From assembly GCA_004431415.1 (NCBI GenBank), contig QPMI01000275.1, positions 1 through 64,000 on the forward strand: a DNA stretch of 64,000 nt, given 5' to 3'. Source of the DNA: Cyanophora paradoxa CCMP329. Its lineage: Eukaryota > Plantae > Glaucophyta. The translations under genes were made by a program, and so were the position numbers. Positions 1-53,266 of this stretch are shown piece by piece. Below the pieces are notes generated by a model, which saw nothing but the letters and a program-made list of their open reading frames with translations, was not told the DNA's origin and made no database searches. Within the stretch, counting starts at the first letter, position 1, and the number at the start of each line of letters is the position of its first letter.

Positions 1-3000
1 GCGCACGGTTGAGGTCGCAGTCGTGAGGTCGAGGCGGCGCTCGATGCCGTCCGCCGCGTCCGCCTCCATCGCCAGGATCAGCTGCTTGGCGCCCTCCGGC
101 CCGCTGCGCGACGGCCGCCGTGAGGACAAGGGGGGAGGGAGGGGGGGAGGGGGGGGGGGACGGGGCATTTCTGCTCTAGATTGGATGCTTCTGATCTATG
201 CTGTACTTGTACGGGCCCGGAGAAGGCGCCGGGGGCTCACATGGGGTTCGCCGCGAGGTTGAGCTCCACCAGCGACTCGTTCGCCTGCTTGTTCGCCTGA
301 GGGAGAGAGGCGCGAGCCGAAGAGGCTCGGAGAGGCGGCGCTGGCGCACGGCGAAGGCGTGGCGGAGGCGGCGCAGGAGCGGCCCTGGAGCCTGCCGGCA
401 GCGCGAGGCCCCCAGGATCAGGAAGCGTTGAGAGGAAGAGAGCTTAGATAAGGATTCAGATCGAGAGAGGAGCTTAGAATGAGGATTAGTTTAGAGAAGG
501 AGCTTGGGGTTGGGGCGCCTGTTGTGGAGAGGTCGAGGACTGAAGGCCTCGTTGTCGCGGAGGCGGGCCAGGGCCTGGCCTCCACGTCCGAGAGCCCGTT
601 CCACGCCAGGTTCAGCGAGGTTAAGCCCTCGTTGCTGCCGAGCGACCTGTGTAGGGTGAGGAGAGGAGAGGAGGGAGGTGTGGAGAGGGATAGGATGGGG
701 CCACGCGAGGAGGGCGGCGGCGAGATGGCCTAAGTGGCTTAGGTGTGGCTTAGAGAAGAGTTGAGAGGGCGGGGCGGGGGCGGGGGCGGGGGCGGGGCGA
801 GGGGGCGGGCGCACGCGAGGAGGGCGGCGGCGGCGCGGCGCGGATCTTGTTCCAGGAGAGGTCCAGCTCCTGGAGGGTCCCGTTCTGCAGCAGGGCCCGC
901 GCCAGCGCCAGCGCCCCCGTCTCGTTCACCCTGCCAGAGTGAGGCGGGCCGGCGCCGATCGCGAGGCGGCGGCGACGGCGGCGGCGGGGATGGATGACTG
1001 GCGCTGGAAAAGAGGCAGAACCGGAGGTTCTAGGGGACCCAAAGGTTCTAGGTTCTAGGAGCTCAGAGGATGGCCTGGAGCGGGACGGGCGCCCTAGACG
1101 CGTACAGGCCGACCGCGCGGCGCGCGGGGGCGTGCGGGCGGGCGCACTGGTTGCGGAGAGGTCGAGGGCCGTGAGGACGTGTTGGCGTAGAGGCCCCGCA
1201 CAGCGTCCGCACCGCCGCCCCGTCAGCTGCCCCCGCCCCCGTCAGCCTCTACGGAATGGAAGGAAGGAAGAAAGAATCCGCGTGTGGAATGTATGCGCAG
1301 AAGCCGGCGCCGGCACGCCCTCGCGCGCGTTCTCGATGGAATGGAGGCCTAGGAAGGGCCCCAATGAATGTGGATGGAGGCGGGGAAATAGGTCCTTCGC
1401 GGGTGTGGCGGGCGCCAGCTAGGCGAGCCGCGTGGAAGGCGCGTGTGGGAGCTAGCTTGAGCTTAAGAGGGTGGGAAGCTGCCTTGTTCTCGGTGAGCTT
1501 GAGGGTGGCGAGGCGGCAGCCGGGTGGAGAGGCGGCGGCGAGGGCGCCGCAGCCCTCCGTCCCAGCTGGTTCGACGAGAGGTCCAGCACCGGATGTGCGG
1601 GTTCACCCGCAGCGCCTGCGCCGGCTCCCTCGCTAGATGGCTGGAGACGGGCCGAGAGGCGGGGTGGGCGGGTTCTTCAGGAGCGACGCCTCAGGGTTGC
1701 GGGCGGGCGGGCGGGGGCGGACGCGACGGCCTCACGGGCGGTGCTCTAGAGACGCCCTCGGCACGCTCAGGGCGGGGCGGAGCGGGGAGGCGGGCGGAGG
1801 GGCCTCCTCTAGGGCCCCCTTCTAGGGGCGGGGCGGGGGCGGGACCCGATGGCCCGGGCACTTCTTTCAATGTTCTAGAGACGCCTCGGCATGCCTAGGC
1901 GGGTCGGGCCGGGGGCGGGGGCGTGCCTCTGCGATGGCGACGGAGCCCTCGGTGCCGATGCGGTTCTCCCGCAGCCGCAGCTCCTCCACCTGCCGGGGGC
2001 CAAGGCCAGGGCCAGGGCCGCCGTCAGCCAACGACGAACAAGCGTCCTAATGACTTATTGGTTTATCATCAACCTTGGCGGCGCCGTCCTTTATCAAAAG
2101 GGTTCGTAAAAGGGCTCCCATTGACGCGGGGCCCCTGCAAGGCTGAGGCGCGGCGGACCTTTGCGGCGCCGTCCTGGACGCTGTGGCGACGGCGCGGGAC
2201 ATGGCGTCCCCAGCGAGAAGTGCGACAGGTCCAGCTGATCCGCGTCCTGCGGGGAGAGGGGGAGGCTGAGGCGCGCAGAGGGCACTCTCTTCTGGCGGGC
2301 CGGGGCACCTGCTGGCCGGCCGAGAGGGACGCCGGCGGGCTCGCCGTCCCGGGCTGCCCTGCGACCGCGCCCGCGCCCGCGGCGGCGACCGAGAGCGGGG
2401 CGAGGCCGCCGAGCCGCGCTCCAGGTTCACAGCGATCGCCATCGGCGTCAGCCGCATCTGAGGTGAGAGGTGAGAGGGCTGTCGATCTCTAAGGCTGTGA
2501 GAGGTCAGAGGCCGGGCGGGCGAGCCTCGGAGCACTTGTTGACGAAGCGGGCGGCGACGAGCTCGCCCGTCGTCTCCGCCCCGCCACCGCCTCCGCCAGC
2601 GCCGCCTCCTCCGACCGGCTAAGGGATGGTTAGGGGTACAGAGTTACGGGGGGGGGTGGAGCGCACGGTCCGGATGTTCGTCTGCAGGTCGCGGCTCTTC
2701 TGGTACAGCTTCGCGAACGCCTTCCGGTCCGGCGGCCGCAGCTGGCCCAGCTGCGCGTACCCCGCTGAGAGGGCGCCCGGGGGGAGGGGGGGGGTAGGAG
2801 GTGGAGGGGGGTACTACCTCGCTGCGGGAGGTGCTGAGGATGCTGCGGGTCGTGTGCTGTGCCCCATCGCCCTCGGCGCCTGCGAACGCAGCGGCTCGTT
2901 CCCCGACGGGGGGCGGGCGGGGGGGAGGTTGGAGGGAAAGGTACCGGAGGCGGTGCGGGAGAGGGAACGCAGCGTCCCGCCGCCGCCGCCGCCGCTGCAG

Positions 3001-19086: not shown

Positions 19087-22000
19087 ATGCATACGCGTGT
19101 AATCGTAACGCTGCAGCTGGTCTTTGGCCTGCTGTTGTTTGTCCAACCCTGCCGGCCTCTTGAGCTTGCAGCTGCGCATCCGGCTACAGCGGCATTCGTG
19201 CAGACGCAGGTGCATCAGAGAGAATGCGATATCAACCCGCAGTATCACGCAGACGTCGAGCTCGGTGGGGTGTCGGGCTCGGCAGGGCCTTCAGCATGCG
19301 CAGCTGGCGCCGCAGCGATAGCGTGCACAGCTGCAGATGCAGCTGCGACTCGCGCTATCGATATTGCTGAGGCTGCAACCGGCTGCGGTTCGGCAACGAC
19401 AACTCACGTGCACCCACAAATTTCAATCGAGGCACATGATGAATACGCATACGCACACGCAGACGCCGCGTTCGGCGCTGGCGCCAAAGACGAACACGAA
19501 CATGATCATGAGCAGGCGCACGCGGGAGCAATGGGGGAGCACGGAGGGCCGTACGACCACCCCGAGGTGCGTCGACGTCTCAGCTCGAGATTGTATGCCG
19601 CAGTGCATGCGTACAAGTAGAAACTCGTGCTTGATTGTGGACCGACTGACGCTGTTTCTTTCCGCAGTTGCTCAAAGACCTGCTCACCGCCGATGAAGTG
19701 AACTTCTTAATTGACTTGAGCGATCAACAAAAAGAACCGTATCTTTACCTGCATCCACAAGGTCCGCTTATTCTATGCGCGCGCACCTACGCGTAAAATT
19801 CGAGACACGAACGTCCGTAGAATTCAGGAATGGTAGCCGGCTACGGTCTGTTATCGAAAAGATTATTGACCGCCTCGGTCCTTCGTATTTGTATGAAGAC
19901 ATCCTCTCCGACGGCGTTCGCATTTTCTTGTGAGTTTTAAGGCCGGGCTTCGATGTGATCATTCAAGAACTGCCGATCGTGCTGCAGTACTAGTGCACTG
20001 CGCGCATGCGGCACGAGCACGTGCGCACCCCTCACACAGCTCGCAGATACGCCCCTGAAAATACCAGAACCGTATTTGCGAATGACTATCACAATGATGC
20101 GTGAGTAAATATAATTCTTAAAGCTTTGCTGCCAAATCGCAAATCTTTTAATTTCTAAAGACGAAGTTCTCTTTGCGTGCCCGGCCGCGCAGTTGCTGTT
20201 TGGATGACTGTGGGGAGTGGTACAAAAAGTGCGTATACGTATACACGACTAATTGAAAAACTAGAGGTCGAACGGTAGGATAGAAGCGAGGGATTTAGAT
20301 CCCTCGCGGGTGTGGCGGAGGCGCTAGGCGTGCTTCCGTTCAAGAAGCGGCGGCGTCCCCCGTTCTCGAGGCGCAGAAGAATGCGCGCACCTCGCGGGCG
20401 CTGTCGTACGTCAGTTCCCGTACAGAGAGAGGTACGTGCGCTCGCGCGCTGCCTCTTGGCTCTGTTTCTGCTCCGTGACGAGTCTCAGTGATTTGAGCGG
20501 AGCCGTCTTCAGCGGGATTTAGATCTCTGGATTTGGACAGAGTTTAGCCTAGAGGCTTTTGCCTGCGCGATGCAGGAGCTGCACTCACCGGGCGTGGCCG
20601 CGGTGAGGAGCTAAAGGCGCTGCCCGACAGCAATTTGATCGGGAGGCCAAGACAACGATTCCAGCAGGGAACGAGGCAGGACTCTGAAAAGCGAGTCAGC
20701 AGTGTCGGAAAAGAAGGAAAGAAGCCCGAACCGCGGCGGTGGGCGAACGATTGACGTGGAGGGGCTTGCCGCCGCCCAGGGCGTTGTCGATAGGCGGGGC
20801 ATTTCGCATCGTTCTGTGCGGTCGTAAGACTTGAGCGACGGCGCGGGCGGCGAGGTGTCGGCGTCTGGGCGCACGGAAGCGAAGTTCAAACGCGGCGAAT
20901 GTGCTTTTTGCAGCAGGGTACGTGACTTTTATAGGACCCGGGGGAGGAGACCCCAGGGGGGTACGCTGTTATGCGTGTTGCAATTTGGACCTTGCAAGTT
21001 GGGTACATGATTGTATTTTTAAAAAAAACAAACAACGCCGAGAAGGCTATTCTTTCGCGCGAGAAAGAGACAGCCGAGGCGCTGCGCGCGCGGCGGGGGG
21101 CGGCCGCGCGCGCTGCGCCGAGGCTGTGACCCACCACTAACCCAGCGGAGATTTCCGCTCGGCCGCGGCCTGCGAGATTCTCAGTACCAGAGGTAAGGCA
21201 CGGAAATGAACGGGTTGCGTACGCGTTCAAGCGGAGCTGGAGGCTCCGTCCGATTAGCCCGACCTGCTGGCGACTGAGTGAGTAGTCGCAGCAGGCCGTG
21301 GCCGCCTTCGTATTTTCGAAGAATGCGGCAAGAATGCGGCTAGCGCTGACGCAATGTCTAGATCTGTTACAGGGTTTGGAAGGCGTGCACGGGGAGGGCG
21401 AACCCAGGGCGAAGGGTGGCGCCGAGCACTGTTGGAATGGGCAGATCCGATGTGCATCAGATCAAGGGCCGACGCCAGGACGGCAAAGAGAAGAGTAAAG
21501 CTCTGAAGATGAAGAGAGCGTGCAGGAGCATGCAAGTGCGCATGCAAGAAGTGAGCCGACTCGGAGATTGACTCGGAGTGAGCTGAAGCGAGGTGCACCG
21601 CGGAGGTGGAGAGAGAGACAAGGAGAAGCAAGATGAAAGGAATGTGCTCGTGCGGGGGATGAGCTTCAGCTCGGGTGCTGCGCCACTCGGGAATCAGTTG
21701 GCGAGCGTCGAACGCGCGTCTGGAGGCGCGTACCTGGTAAGCGAGCATATAGCTGCTGTTCTGCGGGCAGAGAAAGATCAGGAATCTAGCTCGGGAAGAG
21801 CAAGAGCGCAGAGCACGCACGCGCTACTGGAATGAGCCGGTCCGATGCGCATCAGATCGAGGGCCGACGCCAGGACGGCAAAGAGAAGAGTAAAGCTCTG
21901 TAGATGAAGAGAGCGTGGCCTGCAGGAGCATGCAAGTGCGCATGTAAGAAGTGAGCCGACTCAGAGATTGACTCGGAGTGAGCTGAAGCGAGGTGCACCG

Positions 22001-25000
22001 CGGAGGCGGAGAGAGAAACAAGGAGAAGCCATCCAAAAAGGAAGATGAAAGGAATGTGCTCGTGTGGGGGATGAGCTTCAGCTCGGGTGCTGCGCCACTC
22101 GGGAATCAGTTGGCGAGCGTCGAACGCGCGTCTGGAGGCGCGTACCTGGTAAGCGAGCATATAGCTGCTGTTCTGCGGGCAGAGAAAGATCAGGAATCTA
22201 GCTCGGGAAGAGCAAGAGCGCAGAGCACGCACGTGCTGGGCGGGCGTAAGAGCCACGAGCTGCAGCTGCAAGAACCCCGTCATGGACGCTTCTGCGAGGA
22301 GGAGCAGATTCTGAGCTTAGAGAGAGACCGACGGTCAGCAAGATCGCAGCGTACGATCCCAGGATCGCGGCGCCGATGCAGGGCGTGGAGGTCAATCGTT
22401 AGAGCCGCGCCGTTCTGGACGCTTCTGCGGCGCGGAGCAGCGGCAGTCCTTAAGACCTCGGAAAGATCGCAGTTTTAGAAGCACGCACGCACGATTCGAG
22501 GATCGCGGGCGCTGCCGGACACGCTGTGTCCTTGGTGTTGGCGCGCGGAGGGCGCCCTGCTTTGCTGCATTTGATGGAGCTGCTCAAAGGACAGCTGCAG
22601 GCCGGTTAGAACGTGAAGTTTCGGGCGAGGGCGGGCAGGCACACGATGAACGTGGCTGACGCGGCGGTGGAGGCCGATCCTGCTTGAGCTTCGCGGCTGA
22701 TGCCGGGGAGATGTTATCGTTGGAGCTTGCAGATGAGCATGGGCAAGTGATCATGAGCTGGCAGGACGATGCGCCGCCACCAGTCGATGTAATGGTTGGA
22801 AGCGCGAGAGCGCAGAGTTGAGGTTGAAGCGGCTTTGTTTTGAATAGATTGCTCGTCACGGAAGTTCAGAATCGAAGAGCCAGAGGCTGAACGCGGTAAA
22901 GATTAGATTGAGGTGCAGAATCGACCGAGGACGAAGTCCACGGGAATGGAACGGAAGAACACCTTATTCGACCGAAGACGAAGTCTTCGGGACGCCTACG
23001 CGCGTGGACAGTGCACCGGAGATGTCGAGGAGAGCTCATCGCCTGAGGGTAGTCCCTGCCCGTCAGGCTCGCAGTCGCTCGTCTCATGTATGGCGCGCGT
23101 AGGATAGAAGCGAGGGATTTAGATCCCTCGCGGGTGTGGCGGAGGCGCTAGGCGTGCTTCCGTTCAAGAAGCGGCGGCGTCCCCCGTTCTCGAGGCGCAG
23201 AAGAATGCGCGCACCTCGCGGGCGCTGTCGTACGTCAGTTCCCGTACAGAGAGAGGTACGTGCGCTCGCGCGCTGCCTCTTGGCTCTGTTTCTGCTCCGT
23301 GACGAGTCTCAGTGATTTGAGCGGAGCCGTCTTCAGCGGGATTTAGATCTCTGGATTTGGACAGAGTTTAGCCTAGAGGCTTTTGCCTGCGCGATGCAGG
23401 AGCTGCACTCACCGGGCGTGGCCGCGGTGAGGAGCTAAAGGCGCTGCCCGACAGCAATTTGATCGGGAGGCCAAGACAACGATTCCAGCAGGGAACGAGG
23501 CAGGACTCTGAAAAGCGAGTCAGCAGTGTCGGAAAAGAAGGAAAGAAGCCCGAACCGCGGCGGTGGGCGAACGATTGACGTGGAGGGGCTTGCCGCCGCC
23601 CAGGGCGTTGTCGATAGGCGGGGCATTTCGCATCGTTCTGTGCGGTCGTAAGACTTGAGCGACGGCGCGGGCGGCGAGGTGTCGGCGTCTGGGCGCACGG
23701 AAGCGAAGTTCAAACGCGGCGAATGTGCTTTTTGCAGCAGGGTACGTGACTTTTATAGGACCGGGGGAGGAGACCCCAGGGGGTACGCTGTTATGCGTGT
23801 TGCAATTTGGACCTTGCAAGTTGGGTACATGATTGTATTTTTAAAAAACAAACAACGCCGAGAAGGCTATTCTTTCGCGCGAGAAAGAGACAGCCGAGGC
23901 GCTGCGCGCGCGGCGGGGGGCGGCCGCGCGCGCTGCGCCGAGGCTGTGACCCACCACTAACCCAGCGGAGATTTCCGCTCGGCCGCGGCCTGCGAGATTC
24001 TCAGTACCAGAGGTAAGGCACGGAAATGAACGGGTTGCGTACGCGTTCAAGCGGAGCTGGAGGCTCCGTCCGATTAGCCCGACCTGCTGGCGACTGAGTG
24101 AGTAGTCGCAGCAGGCCGTGGCCGCCTTCGTATTTTGGATGACTGTTTGGATGACTGTGGGGAGTGGTACAAAAAGTGCGTATACGTATACACGACTAAT
24201 TGAAAAACTAGAGGTCGAACGCTAAGCTAAGCAATGATCAATTCGTACATTTTGTAGGTACAACGATGGGCGCCAGCGGCGGTCGGGGATGGTGGTCTGG
24301 CTCAACAGCGGCTCGGAATACGAGGGCGGCTTCACCGAGTTCGTGGTCCGCGATCGCGATCGCCGGCGCCGTCGTCCCCGGCCCCGGCCCGCGGCCGCGG
24401 GCCAGGTCCACGCTGCTCCGAATGATGCTTGGGGCTCCGGCCCATCTGCAAAGTAGAATCTCGGATTCGAGATCAAGGGACCGCCTGGCTGGGGTATAAA
24501 GTTCGACTTGCTACAGAAGGACTCTCTGTTCTGGTACATCAAACTTCTTACAGTGATACGTTCAGCTTCTTGTCTTGCCTTTGAATCTGGAGCAGCCACG
24601 ATTTCGCCGTCCACCGCGCCGGCCAGACGATCCGCGGCCAGAGGAGGTTCGTGGGTATCGAAGCTACAGCCGGTCAGGCTGGTTTATGCGAGACGAAAAA
24701 CGTATACTCTTTGCTCAAAAAATTCCGCGCATGTGCAGAGTAATGACCATTTTTATCAACGCACCTTACACGTGGATGGAGTCACGGGAAATAAAGGGCC
24801 CACAAGGCTACAACAGCACCCTCGCAAACGAGCTACGAGAGAAGTTTCAGCGTGCTAGCGTTAACGTTCACGATCGCGATCAAGCGGAGTCGGATCCGGA
24901 GTCAGTGCGGGTACCGGATTCGAAGACGGATTCCGATGCGCATTACTTGGATTTCGGGTCTGTGCGGCCAGAGGTGGGCTAGCTATAGCGCTGTTTCACA

Positions 25001-26196
25001 CGTGCAACTCGGAAAATGCGTGCGGAAATTCAAACGCGCTCCGATCCGCGCAGATCTGGCCGCTACTTAGCCAGGAGCAAGTGAGCCATCTGAATGCTGT
25101 CTTTTATCAAGAAGACGACGGCGATAAGACTCTCTACAGGAAAGACGTGAACCCTCACGGTGCATCCAGAAATATTCGTAATCAATTGCAAATGCGTTCG
25201 AATCGCCTCGTCCGTTTGAATAGCATTTAATGCGTTGCTATACAGACCCGCATGAACGTGCTGACGCTGGTTTGATTCGCACGGTTCCGGTCCGCATGTG
25301 CGCAGATGGTCTTTTAGACCACATTGTACGAGACGTATTCGAGACGATCTTGCGAAAACTGGGGCCTTCCTACTCATACAATGATCTCTTCACCGCCAGG
25401 TTTTACTCGTGTGTAATCCTATATATATATATGTATGGCTAGGCCTCGAACTGCCATCTAGACTGTCATGCAATATATTTACTGCGGCATTCGCGATCGT
25501 AGGCGTCGACCCCCTGCGACGGGACCACCTGCGCCGCCCTTTTGCAAAGAAGAAATTCACATTGACGCGTGTTGCTCGGACGAGTGCGGTGAATGGTACA
25601 GAACGTGAGCTCTTTTACTGATATATACCTGTAGGATGCGAGTACTGCCGAGGTTTCTAAACGTGAGGCTCTGGGTTGAACGCAGTCACGGCCGCGGCCG
25701 GCAGCGGAGGAGCCAGGTCATTGTGTGGCTGAACAACGGTTTCGAGTACGAAGGGGGGCACTCTTCCTTCGACGTGAGTTACTTGAACCTGCGATTCTTT
25801 GCGGGAACTCAAATTCAAAACGTTAGCTAATGAAAGCGGCCTGCACGCGCCCGGCCAGAACATGGGCCTCCACGTCAAGGGGGCCGCGGGGACGGCGCTC
25901 AAGTTCGACCTTCTGTCGAACGGCACTCTCCTCTGCGACGACTACGCGGTCCATCAGGAGAGGCCCGTGACGCAAGGACTGAAACGGTCCGCAACGTTAA
26001 CGCGTCCAGTGGCAATGCGCCTACTTAATTCGCTTCAATTATATTTGCGGCGCTGATTAATATTTCGTCTCTTCGAATTCGAAATCCCCCGTCGCCGCGC
26101 AGCATGATGCTCGTGTGGCTGCTCGCGCCACTGGAGTGGATGGAAACACTGGAGGGGCCGGCAGGATACGACCGTTCCTTCGCCCTCACGCACTGA
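19087..26196 (+). CDS. Secreted tandem two-domain 2-oxoglutarate/Fe(II) dioxygenase, prolyl-4-hydroxylase-like; one intron holds a 3.9-kb insertion
   Basis: Signal MHTRVIVTLQLVFGLLLFVQPCRP and a His-rich linker. Domain 1: DLLTADEVNFLI, YHND (HxD, ~20090), RQRRSGMVVWLNSGSEYEGGFTEF (~24270-24340), DFAVHRAGQTIRGQR. Domain 2: PLLSQEQVSHL, IHID (~25558), RQRRSQVIVWLNNGFEYEGGHSSF, DYAVHQERPVTQGLK. Stop at 26194-26196. Confidence 0.8.
20196..20274. repeat. Left copy of the 79-bp target-site duplication (right copy 24143-24221)
   Basis: CTGTTTGGATGACTGTGGGGAGTGG...AACTAGAGGTCGAACG occurs identically on both sides of the insertion. Confidence 0.95.
20451..20556 (-). ncRNA. Candidate imperfect type III hammerhead-ribozyme-like motif (second copy 23275-23380)
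   Basis: Minus strand: CUCUG-UC ... CUGAAGA (20512-20506) - stem GCUCCG/CGGAGC - GAAA-CAGAG, with stem III extended by GCCUCU/AGAGGC. Stem I is weak and the base of stem II is non-canonical. Confidence 0.3.
21445..22233. repeat. Internal tandem duplication (~380-390-bp unit x2) within the insertion spacer
   Basis: ~21445-21821 and ~21841-22233 are near-identical, with a few substitutions and small indels. Confidence 0.9.
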
Positions 26197-28706: not shown

Positions 28707-31700
28707 CTAGAACGCGAAGCGCTGGTCGGCCTTGAACCCGAGCTTGTCGAGGTTGGGGATGCACGCGAGGTTGATCATGGGGGCCGGCCCGCACATGAAG
28801 ACCAGCGCGTCGTCGCCCGCCGCCGGCATGTGCGCCCTGCACGCATGCCAGAGCCAGATCAGACCAGCAAACGACAAAGTAAACGATATCTTAATATATA
28901 AGACGCACGCGAGCATGGCGTGGTCGATGAAGCCGGTGGAGTAGGGCCAGGGCTTGCCGCCCTCCGGGGCGCGGTCGACGGTGTACCAGACGCGCACGCG
29001 CCCCGGGTGCGCCGCCGCCATCGCGTCCAGCTCGGAGCGCAGCAGGATGTCTGCGGGGCATGCCTCCGGAGTGAGAAACGAGAAGCGAGGAGGAGGAGGA
29101 GGAGGAGGAGCTTAAGCTGCTTAATAGAAAGCTTATGTCTGCTTAAGCGAGAAGAGGAGCTTTTGTCTGCGGGGGCGGCGGCGGCGGGATCCCGCAGCGA
29201 GAAACGATAAGTGAGGCGAGGCTTAAGCTGCTTATTGAAGCTGCTTTAATTTCATGAGATCAAAGCGCTGCGCTGTGCTGACCGGCCTCGGTCTGGTTGC
29301 CGTAGAGGAGGAAGATCTCGGTGCGGTCCTCGGGGTCCGCCAGCATCGCCTTGGCCACCTGAGGCGAGGCGAGACGAGCGTAAGCTTAAAGAAAGGCGCT
29401 TCAAATAAGAGAAGCGTAGGGACCTGGTACATGGGGGTGATGCCGGTGCCGCCGGCGATCATCCCGACGCGCCTCGCCGAGTGCGGCTTGTCCTCGATCT
29501 CGAAGCGCCCGCGGCCCTTGTACGTGATCTCGCCCGTCGGTCCCTTCACGTCCACCGTGTCCCCGATCGCGAGCGACTCGAGGTGCTGCGAGAAGGCGCC
29601 GCCCTCGGGGAAGCGCGGGTTCGCGTTCTTGAAGTAGACCTGTACATGTGTTAATAAAAAGAAGATTTAAAGGAGACGGATCTCTGTGTTTTTCAATGGT
29701 CCCGGACCTTGACGACGAGGTCGAAGTAGCCCTTGACCTCGTCCGCCGTGGTCGGCGTGTACGCGCGCATGACCGGCTTGCCGTTGACCTGCGGCCGAGG
29801 CGGGGGGCGATCAGAAACGCTCTACTTGGCCGCACGAACGAAAAGCTAAACCTACTAAACCTAGAACTAATCAAAAGCTTATTAAGGGCGCACGGTGGCG
29901 GAGAGGAACATGTGCTGGCCGACGGGGAGGCCGAGGACGTGGTCCGGCGAGGGCAGCGCGAAGCGGAAGCGCCGCGTGTCGTGGCTCAGCACCACCTGAA
30001 AATTTAAGCAAGTCAGTCAACAAGTCATACAAGAGGGCGGGCGCGGGCGCGCGCGCGGGCGCGGGCGCGCCTTCTCGATGAGCTTGACGGCGACCTTCTT
30101 CTTAGGGTCCAGCGTCACCGGCGAGGAGGACCCCGAGGCCGAGGAGGACGAGGCCGGGGCGGCCGAGGCGGAGGAGGAGGCGGGGGCGGCCGCGCCGCGC
30201 AACCAGGTGGGGAGCGCCGGGCACTGCGGGCACGGGCGAGGCTCGGTTGGCGAACGGAGGAGATCTAGAGCTCGGTGGGGAAGGGTGGGTACCTTGGGGT
30301 TGGGGAGGTAGTCGCCGTCGACGTTGCCGACGTACCAGTCGACGAGCATGTCCCACGCCTTCTTGCTGTGGATCGCCTCGAACTCCTCCGTCGTGTCCGT
30401 GCCTGGGCTCCAGTTCAGTTGTTGGCTCGGATCAAATCGATCGGGCCGGCTTAGTGAGCTTTGAACTAAATGAATATAGGCACCGGCGTTGATGGTGATG
30501 GACTTGGCGCCTCCCGGGTGCTCCTTGAGGAACTTGGTGCAGTCGTACACCTGATTACAGAAGATAAGAAGCGTTAGTTGAAGGATGATAAATAGAGCCA
30601 GCTAGATAGTTAAATAGGTAGATAGATATGTGTGCACCTTGTTTGAGACGATGATCCAGCAGTCCTCGGGCGTGTTGTGCTTCTCAATCTGCCGCGGAGA
30701 AGACGCGTCAAATCAAGGGGGCGGAACAGTACTAAGGGGCGGCTCGCCCACCTCGGCCATGGTCAGCTTGTGCGCAGAGGCGGCGGGGGCGGCGGCGGGG
30801 GCGGAGGCGGCGGCGGGGGCGGCGGCGGGGGCGGCGGGAGCGGCAGGGGCGGCAGGGGCGGAGGAGGGGAGGGGCTGCGGGGCCGAGGCGGCGGGGCTCT
30901 TGGGGTCCGGGTGGCGGAGCATCCAGCCGCCCGGCTGGTTGCCGGCCTGCGTCGGGTGCTCGAACCAGACCGCCAGCTCCCCGCTCGCCGTCCGCGTCGG
31001 GTGGACCTGCCTCGCAAGTTAAGCTAAGGCTTCTAAGAGAATCAATTGGAGATCCTTCTAATAAATCAGTATAAGAACCTTGACGCGGAAGTAGGCGTTG
31101 TTGCCCATGCCCATGAGGTTCCAGGTCACGCGCTCCGGCTGCCCGTTGTTCGACTCGTCCCACGCCCGAACCTGCGAACGAAGGGGCGGCGTCAGAGGGG
31201 CGCGGGCGCTGCGAACGAAGGGCCGGGGCGGCCCGGACCATCAGCTCGCGGCAGCGGAGTAGGACGAGGGGGTCCGCCTCGTGCTCCCAGAGGACCCAGC
31301 ACCAGTGGCGCCCCTTGCGGTTCGGCTTCTCGTGCGCGTTGACCTTGGCGTGCTCCCACGTCGCCCCGTCGTCCAGGCTCACCTCCACGCGCGTCACCCG
31401 CCGGCCCCCGCCCGTGTAGGCGTACCCCGCGAGCCGCAGCGGGCCCGGCTGCCCGCCGAACGAGACGAGGTCGCCGTGGGCCGGCGCCCAGAAGGCCGAG
31501 TTGATGTTCAGCTCGTTGAAGATGTAGTCGGGCTTGTACCACCAGCCTGAGCAGCAAAGAAACATAATCTTCAGCCGAGGACCTCGACGCGTTCGCATCG
31601 GAGAGATTAAAGCGCACCCTCGGCGTTCGCCTTCTCCGAGTCGACGTGCGGCGGCATGATCCGGTTGTCGAAGAAGTGATCTGAGATCGAGACCGGAAGG

Positions 31701-32853
31701 ATGGATCTTATAAGCGGCAGATCCAAATACAAAGGTGGAAAAGCTAAAGCGCACAGTAGTTCTGCGTCTCGTCGCCCGAGACGTGGATGGAGCAGAGCCA
31801 CTTGACCATGCGGCCGCCGATCCAGCCCGGGATGATGATGCGGATGGGGTACCCGTGGTCCGGGTGCAGGATCTCCCCGTTCTGCTTGTACGCAAGGATC
31901 ACGTCGCAGTCCTGAGGGGAGTACACGCTCGTCAGGGGAGGGGAGGGGGGTAGGGACAGAATCGAGGGGGGCGGGGAGGGGGGTACCGCACCGGATCCAT
32001 GGCCATGTGGATCGGGATCTGGGTGCCGTAGGTGCCGTCCGAGCCCTTCGGGAGCTGCGGGGGAGACGGGGTACATGAGTTTCGGGGGGTGCGGGGTACA
32101 CGAGTTTCCCCGCGGCCGCGGGGGCGAGCCGTGGCCGGCGCACCTCGGCGCGGGGCCCGGCAAAGTGGACCCAGCGGGCGTTCGTCTCGTCGATGCCGCA
32201 GGCGCGGAGGACGTCGCAGAGGCGCGCGCCCGTCCACACGTTCGTGCTTACGCCCGAAGAGCCCCAGTTGAAGCCCTGCGCGCACGCGGGCGCCCGCCCG
32301 AGTCAGCGCGAGCTCGCGCGCGAGATCGAAAGGGGGACGGCGCGGGGGCGGGCGCACGATCGTCTGCTTGACCATGTTCTCCTCCTTGCGGCGGTTGCCG
32401 GCGCAGACGAGCGTGACCGGGAGCGAGTGCTCGGGCAGAGCCGCGAGGTCGTCCATAGAGAACGAGCGCGGCGCGGCCAGGAGCCCCGTCACGTCGACGC
32501 GGTGCGTCGCCCAGTCCAGACGCGGCACCTGCGCGGCCACGATATGAGCTGATGCCTGAGCCGACGCTGAGCTGGGGCGAGCGCACGGCGCCGTGGTTCC
32601 GGACGTAGTGGAGCGGGACGGAGGTGATGAATCCGTCCTCGCGCAGGGCGTGGACGGGCGCCTCGCAGTTGAACGGGTGGCGCCCCGTGAGGCGCACGAG
32701 CTCCGGGTGGCGCCCCACCCACTCGTCGGGCGTGCCCACGTCGCGCGCGTCAACCGGCAGCTGCCGCGGCGCCCGCGGCGGCTTCGCGCTCGCCGCGAAG
32801 GCCGCGTCGGTGGCGAGCGGCATGGCGGGCATCTCGTTCGGGAGCGGCGGCAT
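28707..32853 (-). CDS. NIA: Assimilatory nitrate reductase (Moco, dimerisation, cytochrome b5, FAD and NAD(P)H domains), many exons
   Basis: [32 protein letters not shown]; LHYVRNHG; [14 protein letters not shown] (Moco Cys); [25 protein letters not shown]; b5 FLKEHPGG and EFEAIHS; [38 protein letters not shown]. Stop at 28707. Confidence 0.97.
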
Positions 32854-33396: not shown

Positions 33397-35701
33397 ATGG
33401 CGCCAAACGCAGTAGCGCTCCCCACAATTGTCACAGTAGACAGCTTGGAGCCGCAGCTGAAGCCGAAAGGGACGATGGCGCCCGAAGTCGACGCCGGCCT
33501 GTACTCCGGCGGCCTTCCAGCACCAGCCGCAGCTGCCGAGCCGAAGAAGTATAAGCTCCCGACCAATGCCGATGGCAAGGCCACCACGTACAACCTCCTC
33601 TCCTTCGCCCAGCCACACAGTGAGCCCACGGCCGCGCTGCCCGTACGCGTCGGCGCCGCGATGCCGACGCTGACCGGGCCGCCCGCAGTGCGCGCGCTGT
33701 GGTGGGAGACGATCGCTTTCTTCGTGTGCTTCAACGCGTGGTTTGCCATCCCTGCGGTCAGCCCCTCGCCCCGGCCCGCACCTGCCGGCGCCCGCGCCGC
33801 GGCCGCTGACGGGCGGCGCCGCAGATGGCGACGACGATCCGCAAGGACATGGGCTTCACGCCGGCGCAGATGGCCGACGCCAACTCGATCGGCGTCGCCG
33901 GGACCATCCTGTCCCGCATCGTGATGGGCGTCGTCTGCGACAAGGCGAGCCGCCGCCCGCCCCGCCCCGCCCCGCCCCGCCCCGCCTCGGCGGGCCTGAC
34001 CGGCGCTGCAGTTCGGGCCGCGCTACGGGCAGGGCTTCGTTCTCTTCTTCGGCGGCATTCCCGTCGCGCTCGCCGGCCTCGCCACGTCGTACAGCGGCTA
34101 CGTCGCCGTCCGCTGGTTCATCTCCTTCGTGCGCCCCCCGCGCCCGCCGCCCGCCGCCCTCCGAGGCTCACGCTTGCTGCCCGCAGATCGGCGCCGCCTT
34201 CGTGCCGACGCAGTACCACAGTGCGCCGGGCGCCGCGCCGCGCTGCCGGCGGCCGCAGCCGCGGGGCGCTGACGCGGCGGCGCGCAGTGTCATTCATGTT
34301 CGCGAAGAACGTGGTGGGCGAGGTGAACGCGCTCTCGGCCGGCTGGGGCAACATGGGCGGCGGCACCACGCACCTCCTCATGCCCGTCATCATGAACTCA
34401 TTCTCCAACTACGGCTACACCCCGCACATGTGCGCCGCGCCCCGGCCGCACCGCGCTCGGCCCGGCCGACGCTCCGTGCGGCGCAGGCAGTGGCGCCTGA
34501 CGATGATCATCCCCGGCGTGGTGGCGATCGTGACGGGCATCTGCGTGATCCTGTTCACGCGCGACCTGCCGGAGGGGAACTACCGCGAACTGCAGAAGAA
34601 GGGCCTTAAGCAGAAGGTCGACACGAAGGCGGCGGTCAAGATCGCGCTGTCGGACTACCGCACCTACATCTTCGCCCTCAACTACGCCGTCTGCTTCGGC
34701 ATCGAACTCACCATCGACAGGTCAGGCGCCCGCGCCTCGCCCCGCCCGCCCTCCCGCCGCGCGGCGCTGACGCCGGCGGGCGCGCAGCACGTTTCCCGAG
34801 TTCTACGCGGACCACTTCAAGTTCGACAAGGTGCAGGCGGGGGCGGCGGCGTCGGCGTTCGGCCTCATGAACATCTTCTCGCGCTGGTCCGGCGGCAAGC
34901 TCTCCGACATCTGCGCCAAGCGCTGGGGCATGCGCGGCCGCCTCTGGCTCATGTGGCTTGGCATCGTCTTGGAGGGCGTCTTCCTCGTCATCTTCGCCCG
35001 GATGGAGAACGTCGTCGCCTCGTTCTTCTTCATGCTCATCTTCTCGTACTGGTGCCAGGTGCGGACCGCCCCCGCCCCCGCCCCTGCGCGGCGCTGTGGT
35101 CGCGGCGCGCCGACGCGCGGGGCGGCAGATGTCGTGCGGGACGACGTTCGGCTGCGTGCCGTACCTCAACCCCAAGGGCCTGGGCGCGGCGTCGGGCCTG
35201 ATCGGGGCGGGGGGCAACGCCGGGGCCATCTTGACGCTGCAGCTCTTCAAGCCGCTGAGCTACATGGACGCGTACACGGTCCTCGGCTGCTTCGTCTTCA
35301 TCGTCCCCTTCTCGCTCGCCTTCGTCAGCTACCCCGAGCTCGGCGGCGCCTCGATGTGGAACTCGGGCGGCTTCGTCCGCGGCCGCCCCGAGGTGCCCCA
35401 CGCGCCCATCGACGCGTCGAGCGTCGCCGGGTCCTCGGTGCACATGAACGGCGAGTGGAGCATAGCCAAGGGCGACGTGTGGAGCACGCACTCGGGCGCC
35501 GCGTTTATGTCCTCGCCCGACGGCGTGGCCCTCAACCACCGCGCCGGGTTCCCCGCCGCCGGCGATTCGGTCCGCAAGGGAACCGTGTACCCCGCGGCGG
35601 CCGACGCGCCGGCCCACGGACAGCCGCCGGCCGCGCCCGTTGCGATGTCGGCGCCGGTCGCCGCCGCGCCCGCCGCGATGGCGGCGCCTTCGCTCCAATA
35701 G
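33397..35701 (+). CDS. NRT2: High-affinity nitrate/nitrite transporter (MFS, NNP family), copy A
   Basis: YKLPTNADGKATTYNLLSFAQPHMRA; GVVCDKFGPRYG; nitrate signature AGWGNMGGG; YAVCFGIELTID; FGLMNIFSRWSGGKLSD; WGMRGRLW; GLIGAGGNAGA. Confidence 0.97.
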
Positions 35702-50953: not shown

Positions 50954-53266
50954 TTACAGGGAGTTGGCCGTGTTCGGAGCAAAGGTCACCGAGGGCGCGG
51001 CGACGACGGGCTGGGCGGGTGCCGCCCCCGAGGGGTAGGCGTCGCCCCTGCGAATCGAGTCGCCGGCCGCGGCAAAGCCGGCTCGGTGGTTGAGGGCGGG
51101 GCCGTCGGGCGTGGCGAGGAACGCGGCGCCCGAGTGCGTGCTCCACATCTCGCCCTTGGCCACGCTCCACTCGCCGCCGGGGTGCATGCTCGTCCCGGCC
51201 GACGTCGGCGCCGGCTCGATGGGCGCGTGGGGCACCTCGGGGCGGCCGCGGACGAAGCCGCCCGAGTTCCACATCGAGGCCCCGCCGAGCTCGGGGAAGC
51301 TGACGCAGGCGAGGGAGAAGGGGACGATGAAGACGAAGCAGCCGAGGACCGTGTACGCGTCCATGTAGCTCAGCGGCTTGAAGAGCTGCAGCGTCAAGAT
51401 GGCCCCCGCGTTGCCGCCCGCCCCGATCAGACCCGACGCCGCCCCCAGGCCCTTGGGGTTGAGGTACGGCACGCAGCCGAACGTCGTCCCGCACGACATC
51501 TGCCGCCCCGCGCGTCGGCGCGCCGCGATCGCAGCGCCGCGCAGGGGCGGGGGCGGGGGCGGTCCGCACCTGGCACCAGTACGAGAAGATGAGCATGAAG
51601 AAGAACGAGGCCACGACGTTCTCCATGCGGGCGAATATGACAAGGAAGATGCCCTCCAAGACGATGCCGAGCCACATGAGCCAGAGGCGGCCGCGCATGC
51701 CCCAGCGCTTGGCGCAGATGTCGGAGAACTTGCCGCCGGACCAGCGCGAGAAGATGTTCATGAGGCCGAACGCCGACGCCGCCGCCCCCGCCTGCACCTT
51801 GTCGAACTTGAAGTGGTCCGCGTAGAACTCGGGGAACGTGCTGCGCGCCCCCCGACGTCAGCGCCGCGCGGCGGGAGGGCGGGCGGGGCGAGGCGCGGGC
51901 GCCTGACCTGTCGATGGTGAGCTCGATGCCGAAGCAGACGGCGTAGTTGAGGGCGAAGATGTAGGTGCGGTAGTCCGACAGCGCGATCTTGACCGCCGCC
52001 TTCGTATCCACCTTGGGCTTGAGGCCCTTCTTCTCAAGGTCGCGGTAGTTCCCGTCCGGCAGGTCGCGGGTGAACAGGATCACGCAGATGCCCGTCACGA
52101 TCGCCACCACGCCGGGGATGATCATCGTCAGGCGCCACTGCCTGCGCCGCCCGGAGCGTCGGCCGGGCCGGGCGCGGTGCGGCCGGGGCGCGGCGCACAT
52201 GTGCGGGGTGTAGCCGTAGTTGGAGAACGAGTTCATGATGACGGGCATGAGGAGGTGCGTGGTGCCGCCGCCCATGTTGCCCCAGCCGGCCGAGAGCGCG
52301 TTCACCTCGCCCACCACGTTCTTCGCGAACATGAACGACACTGCGCGCCGCCGCGTCAGCGCACCGCGGCTGCGGCCGCAGGCGCGGCGCGGCGCCCGGC
52401 GCACTGTGGTACTGTGTCGGCACGAAGGCGGCGCCGATCTGCGGGCAGCGGGCGTGAGCCTCGGAGGGTGGTGGCGGGCGCGGGCGGGGGGCGCGGGCGG
52501 CGCACGAAGGAGATGAACCAGCGGACGGCGACGTATCCGCTGTACGACGTGGCGAGGCCGGCGAGCGCGACGGGAATGCCGCCGAAGAAGAGGACGAAGC
52601 CCTGCCCGTAGCGCGGCCCGAACTGCAGCGCCGGTCAGGCCCGGCGGGGCGGGGCGGGGCGGGGCGGGACGGGCGGCGGCGCGCCTTGTCGCAGACGACG
52701 CCCATCACGATGCGGGCCAGGATGGTGCCGGCGACGCCGATCGAGTTGGCGTCGGCCATCTGCGCCGGCGTGAAGCCCATGTCCTTGCGGATCGTCGTCG
52801 CCATCTGCGGCCCCGCCCGTCAGCGGCCGCGGCGCCGGCGGGCCCGGGCGTGGGCTGGGGAGAGGGGCTGACCGCAGGGATGGCAAACCACGCGTTGAAG
52901 CACACGAAGAAAGCGATCGTCTCCCACCAGAGCGCGCGCACTGCGGGCCGCACGGTCAGCGTCGGCATCGCGGCGGGCAGCGCGGCCGCGACCGCGGCGC
53001 GGGTTGGGGCGTCGAGCGCGGGGCTCACTATGCGGCTGGGCGAAGGAGAGGAGGTTGTACGTGGTGGCCTTGCCATCGGCATTGGTCGGCAGCTTGTACT
53101 TCTTCGGCTGAGTTGCGGCGGAGGGCATCGGCAGCTCTTGCACGTCGGAGCTGGAGGCGGAGGGAGAGTCTGAGATCTTCTTAACTTTCTCCTCGAACAT
53201 CGGCGGCCGCTGGCTCTCTACGTGCATCGCCGGCAGCTCGATCGGGGCACTCGCATTCGGCGCCAT
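50954..53266 (-). CDS. NRT2: High-affinity nitrate/nitrite transporter, copy B (inverted paralogue of 33397-35701)
   Basis: Same exon structure and motifs as copy A (AGWGNMGGG, WGMRGRLW, GAGGNAG). The N- and C-termini have diverged. Confidence 0.97.

Follow-up and report, generated by a model that had tools for sequence, protein, structure and literature searches.

A very young, non-coding partial tandem insertion with a 79-bp target-site duplication in an intron of Cyanophora paradoxa

An intron of a plus-strand gene of the glaucophyte Cyanophora paradoxa CCMP329 carries a 3,862-bp insert that consists of a 2,824-nt unit repeated head to tail 1.37 times and is bracketed by a duplicated stretch of host sequence. 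The locus lies within the first 64,000 nucleotides of contig QPMI01000275.1, the stretch of DNA that was analysed here (the window). The evidence supports a very young, essentially zero-age insertion of a non-coding mobile unit, in which a partial tandem is combined with a long target duplication. We consider it probable that the insert arose very recently by target-primed reverse transcription of a non-autonomous Cyanophora paradoxa retroelement, with the enzyme acting in trans. The initial annotation of the window had proposed a very young non-coding insertion of the target-primed type, and this proposal is supported by end repeats free of substitutions and by a duplication that matches at 79 of 79 positions.

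Anatomy of the insertion and its host intron

The two end repeats (A) enclose a unique internal part (B) and are spaced 2,824 nt from start to start (Table 1). They differ by no substitution and by only four indel bases, all of them confined to three runs of a single base (CCC/CC at 20937, G6/G5 at 20956 and A8/A6 at 21021, left/right), in agreement with the earlier statement that only homopolymer lengths distinguish them. The claimed 79-bp duplication of host sequence on both sides of the insert was likewise found without a mismatch. Identities of 1 kb and 79 bp cannot be chance.

Table 1. Positions of features of the insertion, its target and a related relic within the window.
Feature	Position	Strand	Remarks
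Relic, 57 nt	1372-1428	-	79% identical to left terminus (element nt 4-59, hairpin included)
Host intron	19930-24257	+	4,328 nt; ~381 nt minus the insert and second target copy
Target-site duplication, left copy	20196-20274		100% identical to 24143-24221
Left repeat A, 1,042 nt	20275-21316	-	Matches 23099-24136 save three homopolymer runs
Perfect 9-bp hairpin (GCGAGGGAT / ATCCCTCGC, loop of 4)	20286-20307	-	11 nt from left terminus
TATA-box consensus TATAAAAG in left A	20926-20933	-	With its twin in right A, the element's only TATA consensus
Unique internal part B, 1,782 nt	21317-23098	-	Sequence comparison
Internal tandem duplication, two ~400-nt copies, 92-93% identical	21426-22237
Right repeat A, 1,038 nt	23099-24136	-	Matches left A save three homopolymer runs
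TATA-box consensus TATAAAAG in upstream partial copy	23750-23757	-	Candidate promoter
12-bp bulged hairpin near right end of A	24083-24115		Second copy at 21263-21295
Right junction, 12-mer TTTGGATGACTG twice in tandem	24134-24157		First TTT common to element end
Target-site duplication, right copy	24143-24221		100% identical to 20196-20274

That the target is a host intron, as previously claimed, is borne out by a GTGAGT donor at 19930, by the acceptor TTTTGTAG at 24250-24257, by flanking exon frames (19715-19929 and 24258-24345) that are joined in phase, and by a tandem paralogue in which the same exon pair lies only ~170-280 nt apart. The paralogous exons (25224-25439 and 25609-25827) are 48-58% identical to the host-gene pair. 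Pfam searches of the single host exons, one exon at a time, gave no match.

The termini of the element are GTAGGATAG...CGTATTTT, and the right junction reads ...CGTATTTT GGATGA CTGTTTGGATGACTGTGGGG; therefore, the target 12-mer TTTGGATGACTG, which is present in its single-copy version at 20199-20210, occurs here twice consecutively. The TTT of this 12-mer overlaps the terminal TTTT of the element, and positions 24137-24142 (GGATGA) are extra filler. The overlap and the stuttered target described in the initial annotation were thus recovered as a 3-nt microhomology and a 12-nt stutter, the extra bases being derived from the target and not from the element. Strong hairpins are found at both element ends. 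The fold of the terminal 100 nt at the left end has a z-score of -2.98 on the minus strand and -1.46 on the plus strand, and the hairpin near the right end folds with z-scores of -5.5 and -2.4, respectively. The asymmetry of G-U wobbles in the terminal hairpins and the relic carries no strand information. Exact-pattern scans for the left terminus returned no match in prokaryotic genome, metagenome or viral contigs.

The longest ORF in the element spans 188 aa, and Pfam searches of nine element ORFs and one gene-model protein yielded noise only and no family. No reverse transcriptase was found in the 64-kb window, no inverted terminal repeats in the insert and no tRNA-like sequence in the element. 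TG..CA ends are absent, as the repeat starts and ends with the termini given above; the left repeat is not followed by a TGG-type PBS (CGAAGAATGCGG...) and the right repeat is not preceded by a polypurine tract (...ATGTATGGCGCGC), and neither feature is present in either of the orientations inspected. The earlier statement that the insert has no TG..CA termini, PBS, PPT, TIRs or recognisable ORF therefore holds on inspection. Neither end bears a poly(A) or simple-repeat tail, and the 30-40-bp element-derived tail that is a frequent, though not a universal, feature of Penelope-like elements is not present. Simple direct repeats with a 79-bp duplication also differ from the split or inverted repeats without duplication of DIRS/TOC1-type elements, and such a duplication is not expected of Helitrons, which have 5' TC...CTRR 3' ends at an A/T target.

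Copies of the family elsewhere in Cyanophora paradoxa

Word-based protein searches identified EukProt models matching an ORF of the element, namely tig00000144_g9112 and g9113, tig00001177_g7360.t1/.t2 and tig00000984_g6000. These gene models align block by block to A and B on the minus strand and are free of substitutions except for g6000, which differs from the element copy by a few substitutions and an insertion of 6 nt. Models g9112 and g9113 correspond to other units, because each of them requires a different 1-nt homopolymer change with respect to the insert copy; they are consecutive, and their exon layout fits a longer head-to-tail A-B-A-B-A array. Judged by their translations, spurious gene models on three contigs show that the family is multi-copy and that its nearly identical members are spread over at least three contigs. 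The element is not single-copy, and the earlier suggestion of recent activity is supported. A lies directly left of B in all copies seen via the gene models. Models starting inside B were considered as evidence of copies without the right-hand A, and this reading was dropped because tig00001177_g7360 fits the insert copy perfectly and could be the model of that very copy. In the published Cyanophora proteome, at least four gene models are translated from the element. The literature searched contained no description of the family, which is a clean new family, but green algae already provide examples of this style of insertion.

The relic listed in Table 1, which lies within an intron of a leucine-rich-repeat-like gene, scores 45.4 bits, compared with a mean of 28.2 (sd 2.7, maximum 39.7) over 300 dinucleotide shuffles, and probably represents an old and severely 5'-truncated member of this family or of a sister family.

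Proposed mechanism, template strand and enzyme donor

In the mechanism that we propose, the two strands would have been nicked 79 bp apart, the top strand after ...GGTCGAACG (20274) and the bottom strand opposite 20195/20196. The 3' end of the top strand would prime copying of a minus-strand RNA at its 3' terminus (...CUAUCCUAC, with the hairpin 11 nt upstream), and the reverse transcriptase would copy the whole unit, from 20275 to 23098, and continue for 1,038 nt more, with a second RNA as template or along an RNA longer than one unit that came from a tandem master copy, giving rise to a pseudo-LTR. The cDNA end ...TATTTT would anneal via TTT/AAA to the other target end and slip once between two CTG triplets, a single slip that would result in the 12-nt stutter, and fill-in of the staggered nicks would yield the 79-bp duplication. 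In this favoured minus-sense reading, the left A makes up the 3' third of the full-length unit and reaches the element's true 3' terminus at its left end, and the right A is the product of a partial second copying round, a pseudo-LTR upstream of the full unit. The TATA consensus in this upstream copy is a candidate promoter, from which a minus-strand transcript may cross the unit junction 23098/23099. Such a layout, with a truncated copy and possibly a promoter upstream of the full copy, would work in the same way as in Penelope-like elements and in MRC1, a non-coding element of Chlamydomonas that depends on them.

The enzyme may have been supplied by a Penelope-like element or by a LINE. A trait of Penelope-like elements that is present here is the partial tandem with a truncated copy preceding the full copy (1.37 units at a spacing of 2,824). 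Partial tandems, pseudo-LTRs, head-to-tail multicopies and the non-autonomous MRC1 serve as precedents (PMC8557442, PMC9940879). A LINE donor, with the element as a long SINE-like dependant, nicks placed far apart and the extra 0.37 unit added by template switching, is an alternative that we take to be possible though somewhat doubtful. Dualen LINEs of Chlamydomonas generate very long target duplications, which are explained by the distance between two nicks (PMC9977147), and 126-bp duplications of R9 LINEs are cited in the same article; moreover, the Penelope paper lists no glaucophyte, and no Penelope-like element has been reported from this group. However, partial tandems are stated to be absent from non-LTR insertions (PMC8557442), and neither end of the element has a poly(A) or simple-repeat tail; the absent poly(A) tail argues against L1-like LINEs. 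The target duplication was seen here at one length, 79 bp, beside one candidate truncated relic. A broader and more speculative proposal, which we regard as rather unlikely, is that the reverse-transcription machinery of Cyanophora routinely makes pseudo-LTR partial tandems together with very long target duplications, with the 2.8-kb family as an active dependant. If true, the machinery would belong either to an endonuclease-bearing Penelope-like lineage, the first in glaucophytes, or to a LINE making Penelope-style partial tandems.

Several weak lines of evidence favour a minus-strand template RNA primed at the left end, so that the stuttered right junction is probably the 5' junction and not a site of re-priming. 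The significant relic begins with nucleotide 4 of the left terminus; the minus strand carries the only TATA consensus of the element, located in A; all four gene models run in the minus direction; the irregular junction, with microhomology and extra bases, is on the right side; and the minus orientation is antisense to the host gene. Irregular junctions are usual at the 5' junctions of target-primed insertions, as in L1. Some of the arguments on orientation use ab initio gene models with micro-exons. Model g7360 has two isoforms that differ by a CAGCAG tandem acceptor at 21264-21269, and to our knowledge such isoforms are reported in a BRAKER1 annotation only where RNA-seq reads support them. 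BRAKER1 was used to produce the Cyanophora annotation (PMC6704402).

The initial annotation had spoken of a re-priming scar, which implies a plus-strand RNA primed at the right end, and this orientation is probably wrong. Here, the bottom-strand end ...CCAAA would act as primer at the right junction on an RNA ending ...CGUAUUUU; the unit would comprise 21317-24136, and the left A would be a 5'-truncated upstream copy with an arbitrary left end. We find this joint reading unlikely. The junction itself fits priming there equally well, as the TTT/AAA overlap lies exactly at the right junction, where the terminal UUUU would pair with target AAA; a hairpin followed by a U-run is found at the plus-strand 3' end, and the plus strand is purine-rich (positive GC and AT skew). 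Against this reading, the relic elsewhere begins at the supposedly arbitrary left end, no TATA consensus is found on the plus strand, every copy seen has A directly left of B, and the stutter would lie at the 3' junction, whereas 3' junctions are usually clean.

The remaining explanations concern the nature of the element itself. Retrozymes are non-coding, hammerhead-bearing retroelements with circular RNA. A retrozyme-like origin, by rolling-circle reverse transcription of circular RNA, had also been suggested and would agree with a non-coding unit of which more than one is copied head to tail; it fails because no hammerhead was found, and we judge it highly improbable. Searches for ribozymes, hammerhead included, gave no Rfam match at E<=10 and none at gathering score, the window contains no hammerhead core (CUGANGA-N7-17-GAAA), and a relic with a defined terminus argues against permuted ends. 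The target duplications made by LTR integrases measure 4-6 bp. We give very little credence to a non-autonomous LTR element in which A is the LTR and the cDNA was taken up at a staggered break with no integrase involved. Direct repeats of 1 kb in an A-B-A arrangement resemble such an element, and MRC1 was at first misread likewise (PMC9940879), but the insert has no TG..CA termini, PBS or PPT, its duplication is of 79 bp, and the A-B-A-B-A array with which g9112 and g9113 agree is not a structure that LTR elements produce when they insert. The chance is just as slight for a rolling-circle transposon acting at the level of DNA (Replitron- or Helitron-like) that continued past its terminator, or for an assembly artefact. 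Replitron-1 has variable duplications and a right-end hairpin, but Replitrons make short duplications, no Replitron proteins were found in glaucophytes, and short direct repeats mark Replitron ends (PMC10288648), whereas the termini of the element share no terminal repeat. Differences confined to homopolymer lengths are typical of PacBio RSII consensus error (PMC6704402), but an assembler error would not yield a target duplication bracketing an A-B-A insert.

Comparison with known systems

Transposable elements of glaucophytes are almost uncurated, and the Cyanophora genome paper reports 11.5% 'unknown repeats'. The locus described here is textbook-clean and displays enzyme activities at work in this genome, probably widely spaced nicks and copying beyond one unit. 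If the donor is found, the family could become a natural reporter for the origin of pseudo-LTRs and long target duplications; at present, it adds a further case to an insertion style that is already known.

With retrozymes the element has in common a non-coding unit and long direct repeats at both ends, but the defining hammerheads are absent and the duplication measures 79 bp as opposed to ~4 bp. Dualen LINEs are similar in that their target duplication is far above the usual length, with widely spaced nicks as the explanation (PMC9977147); however, they are coding and partial tandems have not been reported for them, whereas the Cyanophora element has no ORF of this kind. In layout, the element is close to MRC1 and further non-autonomous Penelope-like (Chlamys) elements of Chlamydomonas reinhardtii (PMC8557442, PMC9940879). 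In contrast to these, the target in Cyanophora is not a (CA)n or (C)n microsatellite, the element has neither a 30-40-bp tail nor a known autonomous partner, and its host is a glaucophyte, a group from which Penelope-like elements have not been reported. As in MRC1 and these other Chlamys elements, the unit is non-coding and a truncated copy lies before a full copy, probably with head-to-tail multicopies as well; both have internal tandem repeats and no hammerhead, are very young and active, and are readily mistaken for an LTR element.

Anatomy of the insertion and its host intron

The insert has the form A-B-A, in which two copies of a repeat (A) enclose a unique part (B). A host segment of 79 bp at 20196-20274 recurs at 24143-24221 with no mismatches (repeat search and self-BLAST), and the two A copies, when aligned globally, show no substitutions and four indel bases across three homopolymer runs. 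The initial annotation, made from the sequence alone, had described this layout, the 79-bp duplication and the homopolymer-only differences, all of which are confirmed. Part B contains its own tandem duplication (about 400 nt, 92-93% identical), which is older.

The left junction is clean, with ...GGTCGAACG followed by the element start GTAGGATAG. The right junction reads ...CGTATTTT-GGATGA-CTGTTTGGATGACTGTGGGG; here the target 12-mer TTTGGATGACTG is present twice in tandem and the first TTT is shared with the final bases of the element, which bears out the stutter and TTT overlap noted initially. A small hairpin, CTTCG-TATTTT-CGAAG (21305-21321), lies beside the A/B boundary and adjoins a CAAGAATGCGG repeat directly to the right of that boundary (21326-21339); at 24136, the corresponding hairpin position, the second copying round stopped within the loop.

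The proposed placement within an intron of a plus-strand gene is upheld by splice signals (GTGAGT after the exon end at 19929, TTTTGTAG before the exon start at 24258) and by the reading frames of the flanking exons, which join in phase. Without the insert, this intron would measure about 381 nt. The two exons are much closer together in a downstream tandem paralogue, whose intron carries a (TA)n run at 25420-25433. Pfam returned no family for the exons of host gene or paralogue, searched separately as single exons; the host motif WLNxGxEYEGG presumably resembles that of 2-oxoglutarate oxygenases. Elsewhere in the window, nitrate-reductase-like gene pieces, of which one is a Mo-co dimerisation domain (E 2e-27) and others are exons resembling the FAD/NAD-binding end, adjoin ORFs whose matches to the Major Facilitator Superfamily are weak and fall short of the Pfam cut-off; together these may form a nitrate-assimilation gene cluster.

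Features of the insertion, the window and the recovered gene models
Feature	Position	Strand	Length	Remarks
Repeat A, left copy	20275-21316		1,042 nt	repeat search and self-BLAST
Unique part B	21317-23098		1,782 nt	repeat search and self-BLAST
Repeat A, right copy	23099-24136		1,038 nt	repeat search and self-BLAST
Relic	1372-1428		57 nt	79% identical to left terminus of element, from element nt 4
Host gene exon pair	19650-19929 / 24258-24345	+		
Tandem paralogue exon pair	25224-25439 / 25609-25827			about 5.5 kb downstream; 48% and 58% identity to host exons
Region with nitrate-reductase-like pieces and weak MFS-like ORFs, part 1	28707-31895	-		
Region with nitrate-reductase-like pieces and weak MFS-like ORFs, part 2	33825-35201	+		
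Region with nitrate-reductase-like pieces and weak MFS-like ORFs, part 3	51427-52404	-		
tig00000144_g9112.t1	from A through B into A	minus strand of element		
tig00000144_g9113.t1	from A through B into A	minus strand of element		
tig00001177_g7360.t1 /.t2	B (22754) to A (20414)	minus strand of element		
tig00000984_g6000.t1	B to A (21140)	minus strand of element		

TG..CA ends, PBS and PPT are absent from the element in both orientations, the repeat search found no inverted terminal repeats, and no tRNA-like sequence was found. The longest ORF has 188 aa and Pfam searches of nine ORFs gave nothing above noise, in agreement with the absence of TG..CA ends, PBS, PPT, TIRs and a recognisable ORF reported initially; no reverse transcriptase is encoded within the window. 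In Rfam searches, 19500-25000 gave no family at E<=10 and the complete window gave none at gathering score; a motif search did not find the hammerhead core. We therefore reject the retrozyme-like option raised initially, as the ribozyme is missing; this result is compatible with a Penelope-type mechanism, since Naiad and most Chlamys elements also have no hammerheads (PMC8557442 / PMC9940879).

Gene models derived from the element

Copies were sought in the Cyanophora paradoxa protein set EukProt EP00741 with the mechanical ORFs of the element as bait (the 188-aa ORF, then its best match). Five proteins from four gene models were recovered, none with a Pfam domain, and all five map block by block onto the minus strand of the element. 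Three of the four models show no substitutions relative to the copy in the window over 0.8-1.1 kb of exon blocks, while g6000 shows a few substitutions and an insertion of 6 nt. To match either A copy of the window, g9112 and g9113 both need a 1-nt homopolymer change at the N-terminus, and not the same one, indicating that these are other units. The assembly was built from PacBio RSII reads (PMC6704402), so the homopolymer differences in general are just as likely to stem from consensus error as from true mutation.

Judged from these sequences, the family is very young and comprises at least four units on at least three contigs, so the unit is not single-copy and the earlier description as very young and recently active is supported. 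It was not found in the literature searched, in keeping with the suggestion of an undescribed family. On their shared contig the g9112 and g9113 models follow one another without overlap, and their exon positions would fit a head-to-tail array A-B-A-B-A. All four of these models, which belong to the published Cyanophora paradoxa proteome, are chains of micro-exons translated from the minus strand of a non-coding element; they represent errors of annotation or, at most, transcripts of the element.

Strand of the RNA template

The junctions alone are compatible with either strand as template. The model proposed initially has a plus-strand RNA with a UUUU terminus, on which the bottom-strand end ...CCAAA acts as primer. 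The mirror model assumes a minus-strand RNA with priming on the left; the completed cDNA, ending ...TATTTT, would anneal to the same AAA, closing the 5' junction. We consider the mirror model fairly probable because of six lines of evidence: a relic, a TATA box, the gene models, the irregular right junction, antisense placement and fold scores.

The relic scores 45.4 bits, a value that none of 300 dinucleotide shuffles reached (their mean was 28.2 and their maximum 39.7), and lies within an intron of an unrelated minus-strand leucine-rich-repeat-like gene (1-2400). It starts right at the terminus of the element, as expected of a severely 5'-truncated copy if the left end is the fixed 3' end; were the left end an arbitrary truncation point, this start would be a coincidence. 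An intron-like stretch of the same gene contains a long G-rich tract, GGGGGGAGGGAGGGGGGGAGGGGGGGGGGA, at 121-160.

The element has a single TATA-box consensus, TATAAAAG, which A carries on its minus strand. In the right-hand copy (at 23757, with a predicted start site about 30 nt downstream) some 650 nt separate it from the unit junction further downstream, recalling the Penelope / Chlamys-3 start site in the pseudo-LTR, a truncated copy in front of a full copy (PMC8557442). All four gene models follow the minus strand, implausible as these micro-exon chains are in themselves. What distinguishes the two g7360 isoforms is a CAGCAG tandem acceptor (21264-21269), and such a pair in a BRAKER1 annotation presumably reflects spliced RNA-seq reads. 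Microhomology with extra bases, the usual signature of a 5' junction (established for L1), occurs on the right side. A minus-sense element would run antisense to the host gene, as intronic retroelements more commonly do. The left and right terminal 100 nt fold better as minus-strand RNA (z of -2.98 and -5.5 relative to shuffles, against -1.46 and -2.4). In the mirror model the 12-nt stutter, initially taken as a re-priming scar, would instead have arisen from one slippage between two CTG triplets flanking TTTGGATGA while the cDNA end was extended on the target.

Proposed mechanism and possible enzyme donor

An integrase would give a duplication of 4-6 bp. A perfect 79-bp duplication around an insert points to two nicks on opposite strands, 79 bp apart and later filled in; spaced nicks followed by fill-in have been used to explain why LINEs and Penelope-like elements make duplications of variable length (PMC9977147). 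A head-to-tail insert of more than one unit implies that copying ran past the template end, either by a switch to another template or because the RNA was multimeric. What stands of the original interpretation is a young, mobile, non-coding insertion in the Penelope style, without the retrozyme option and probably with the opposite priming end.

The enzymes may have come from a Penelope-like element or from a LINE. The partial tandem, an arrangement reported not to be seen with non-LTR elements (PMC8557442), the absence of a poly(A) tail and probable intron retention favour a Penelope-like donor; against it, none has been reported from glaucophytes in the literature searched, the element has no 30-40-bp tail and its target is no microsatellite. 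A Replitron-type DNA element is unlikely: the duplications of Replitrons are short, their ends bear short direct repeats, and glaucophytes were found to have none (PMC10288648). DIRS/TOC1-type elements make no target duplication, in contrast to the 79 bp here, and an assembly artefact would not leave an A-B-A insert bracketed by duplicated target sequence.

The significance of the element would be greater if its donor were a LINE able to make pseudo-LTRs or a Penelope-like element, which would be the first in glaucophytes. A head-to-tail insert exceeding one unit, or pseudo-LTR, defines Penelope-like insertions and is also made by their non-coding dependants, including MRC1 of Chlamydomonas, which was long misread as an LTR element (PMC8557442, PMC9940879). 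The element described here resembles MRC1 and Penelope-like insertions in this respect.
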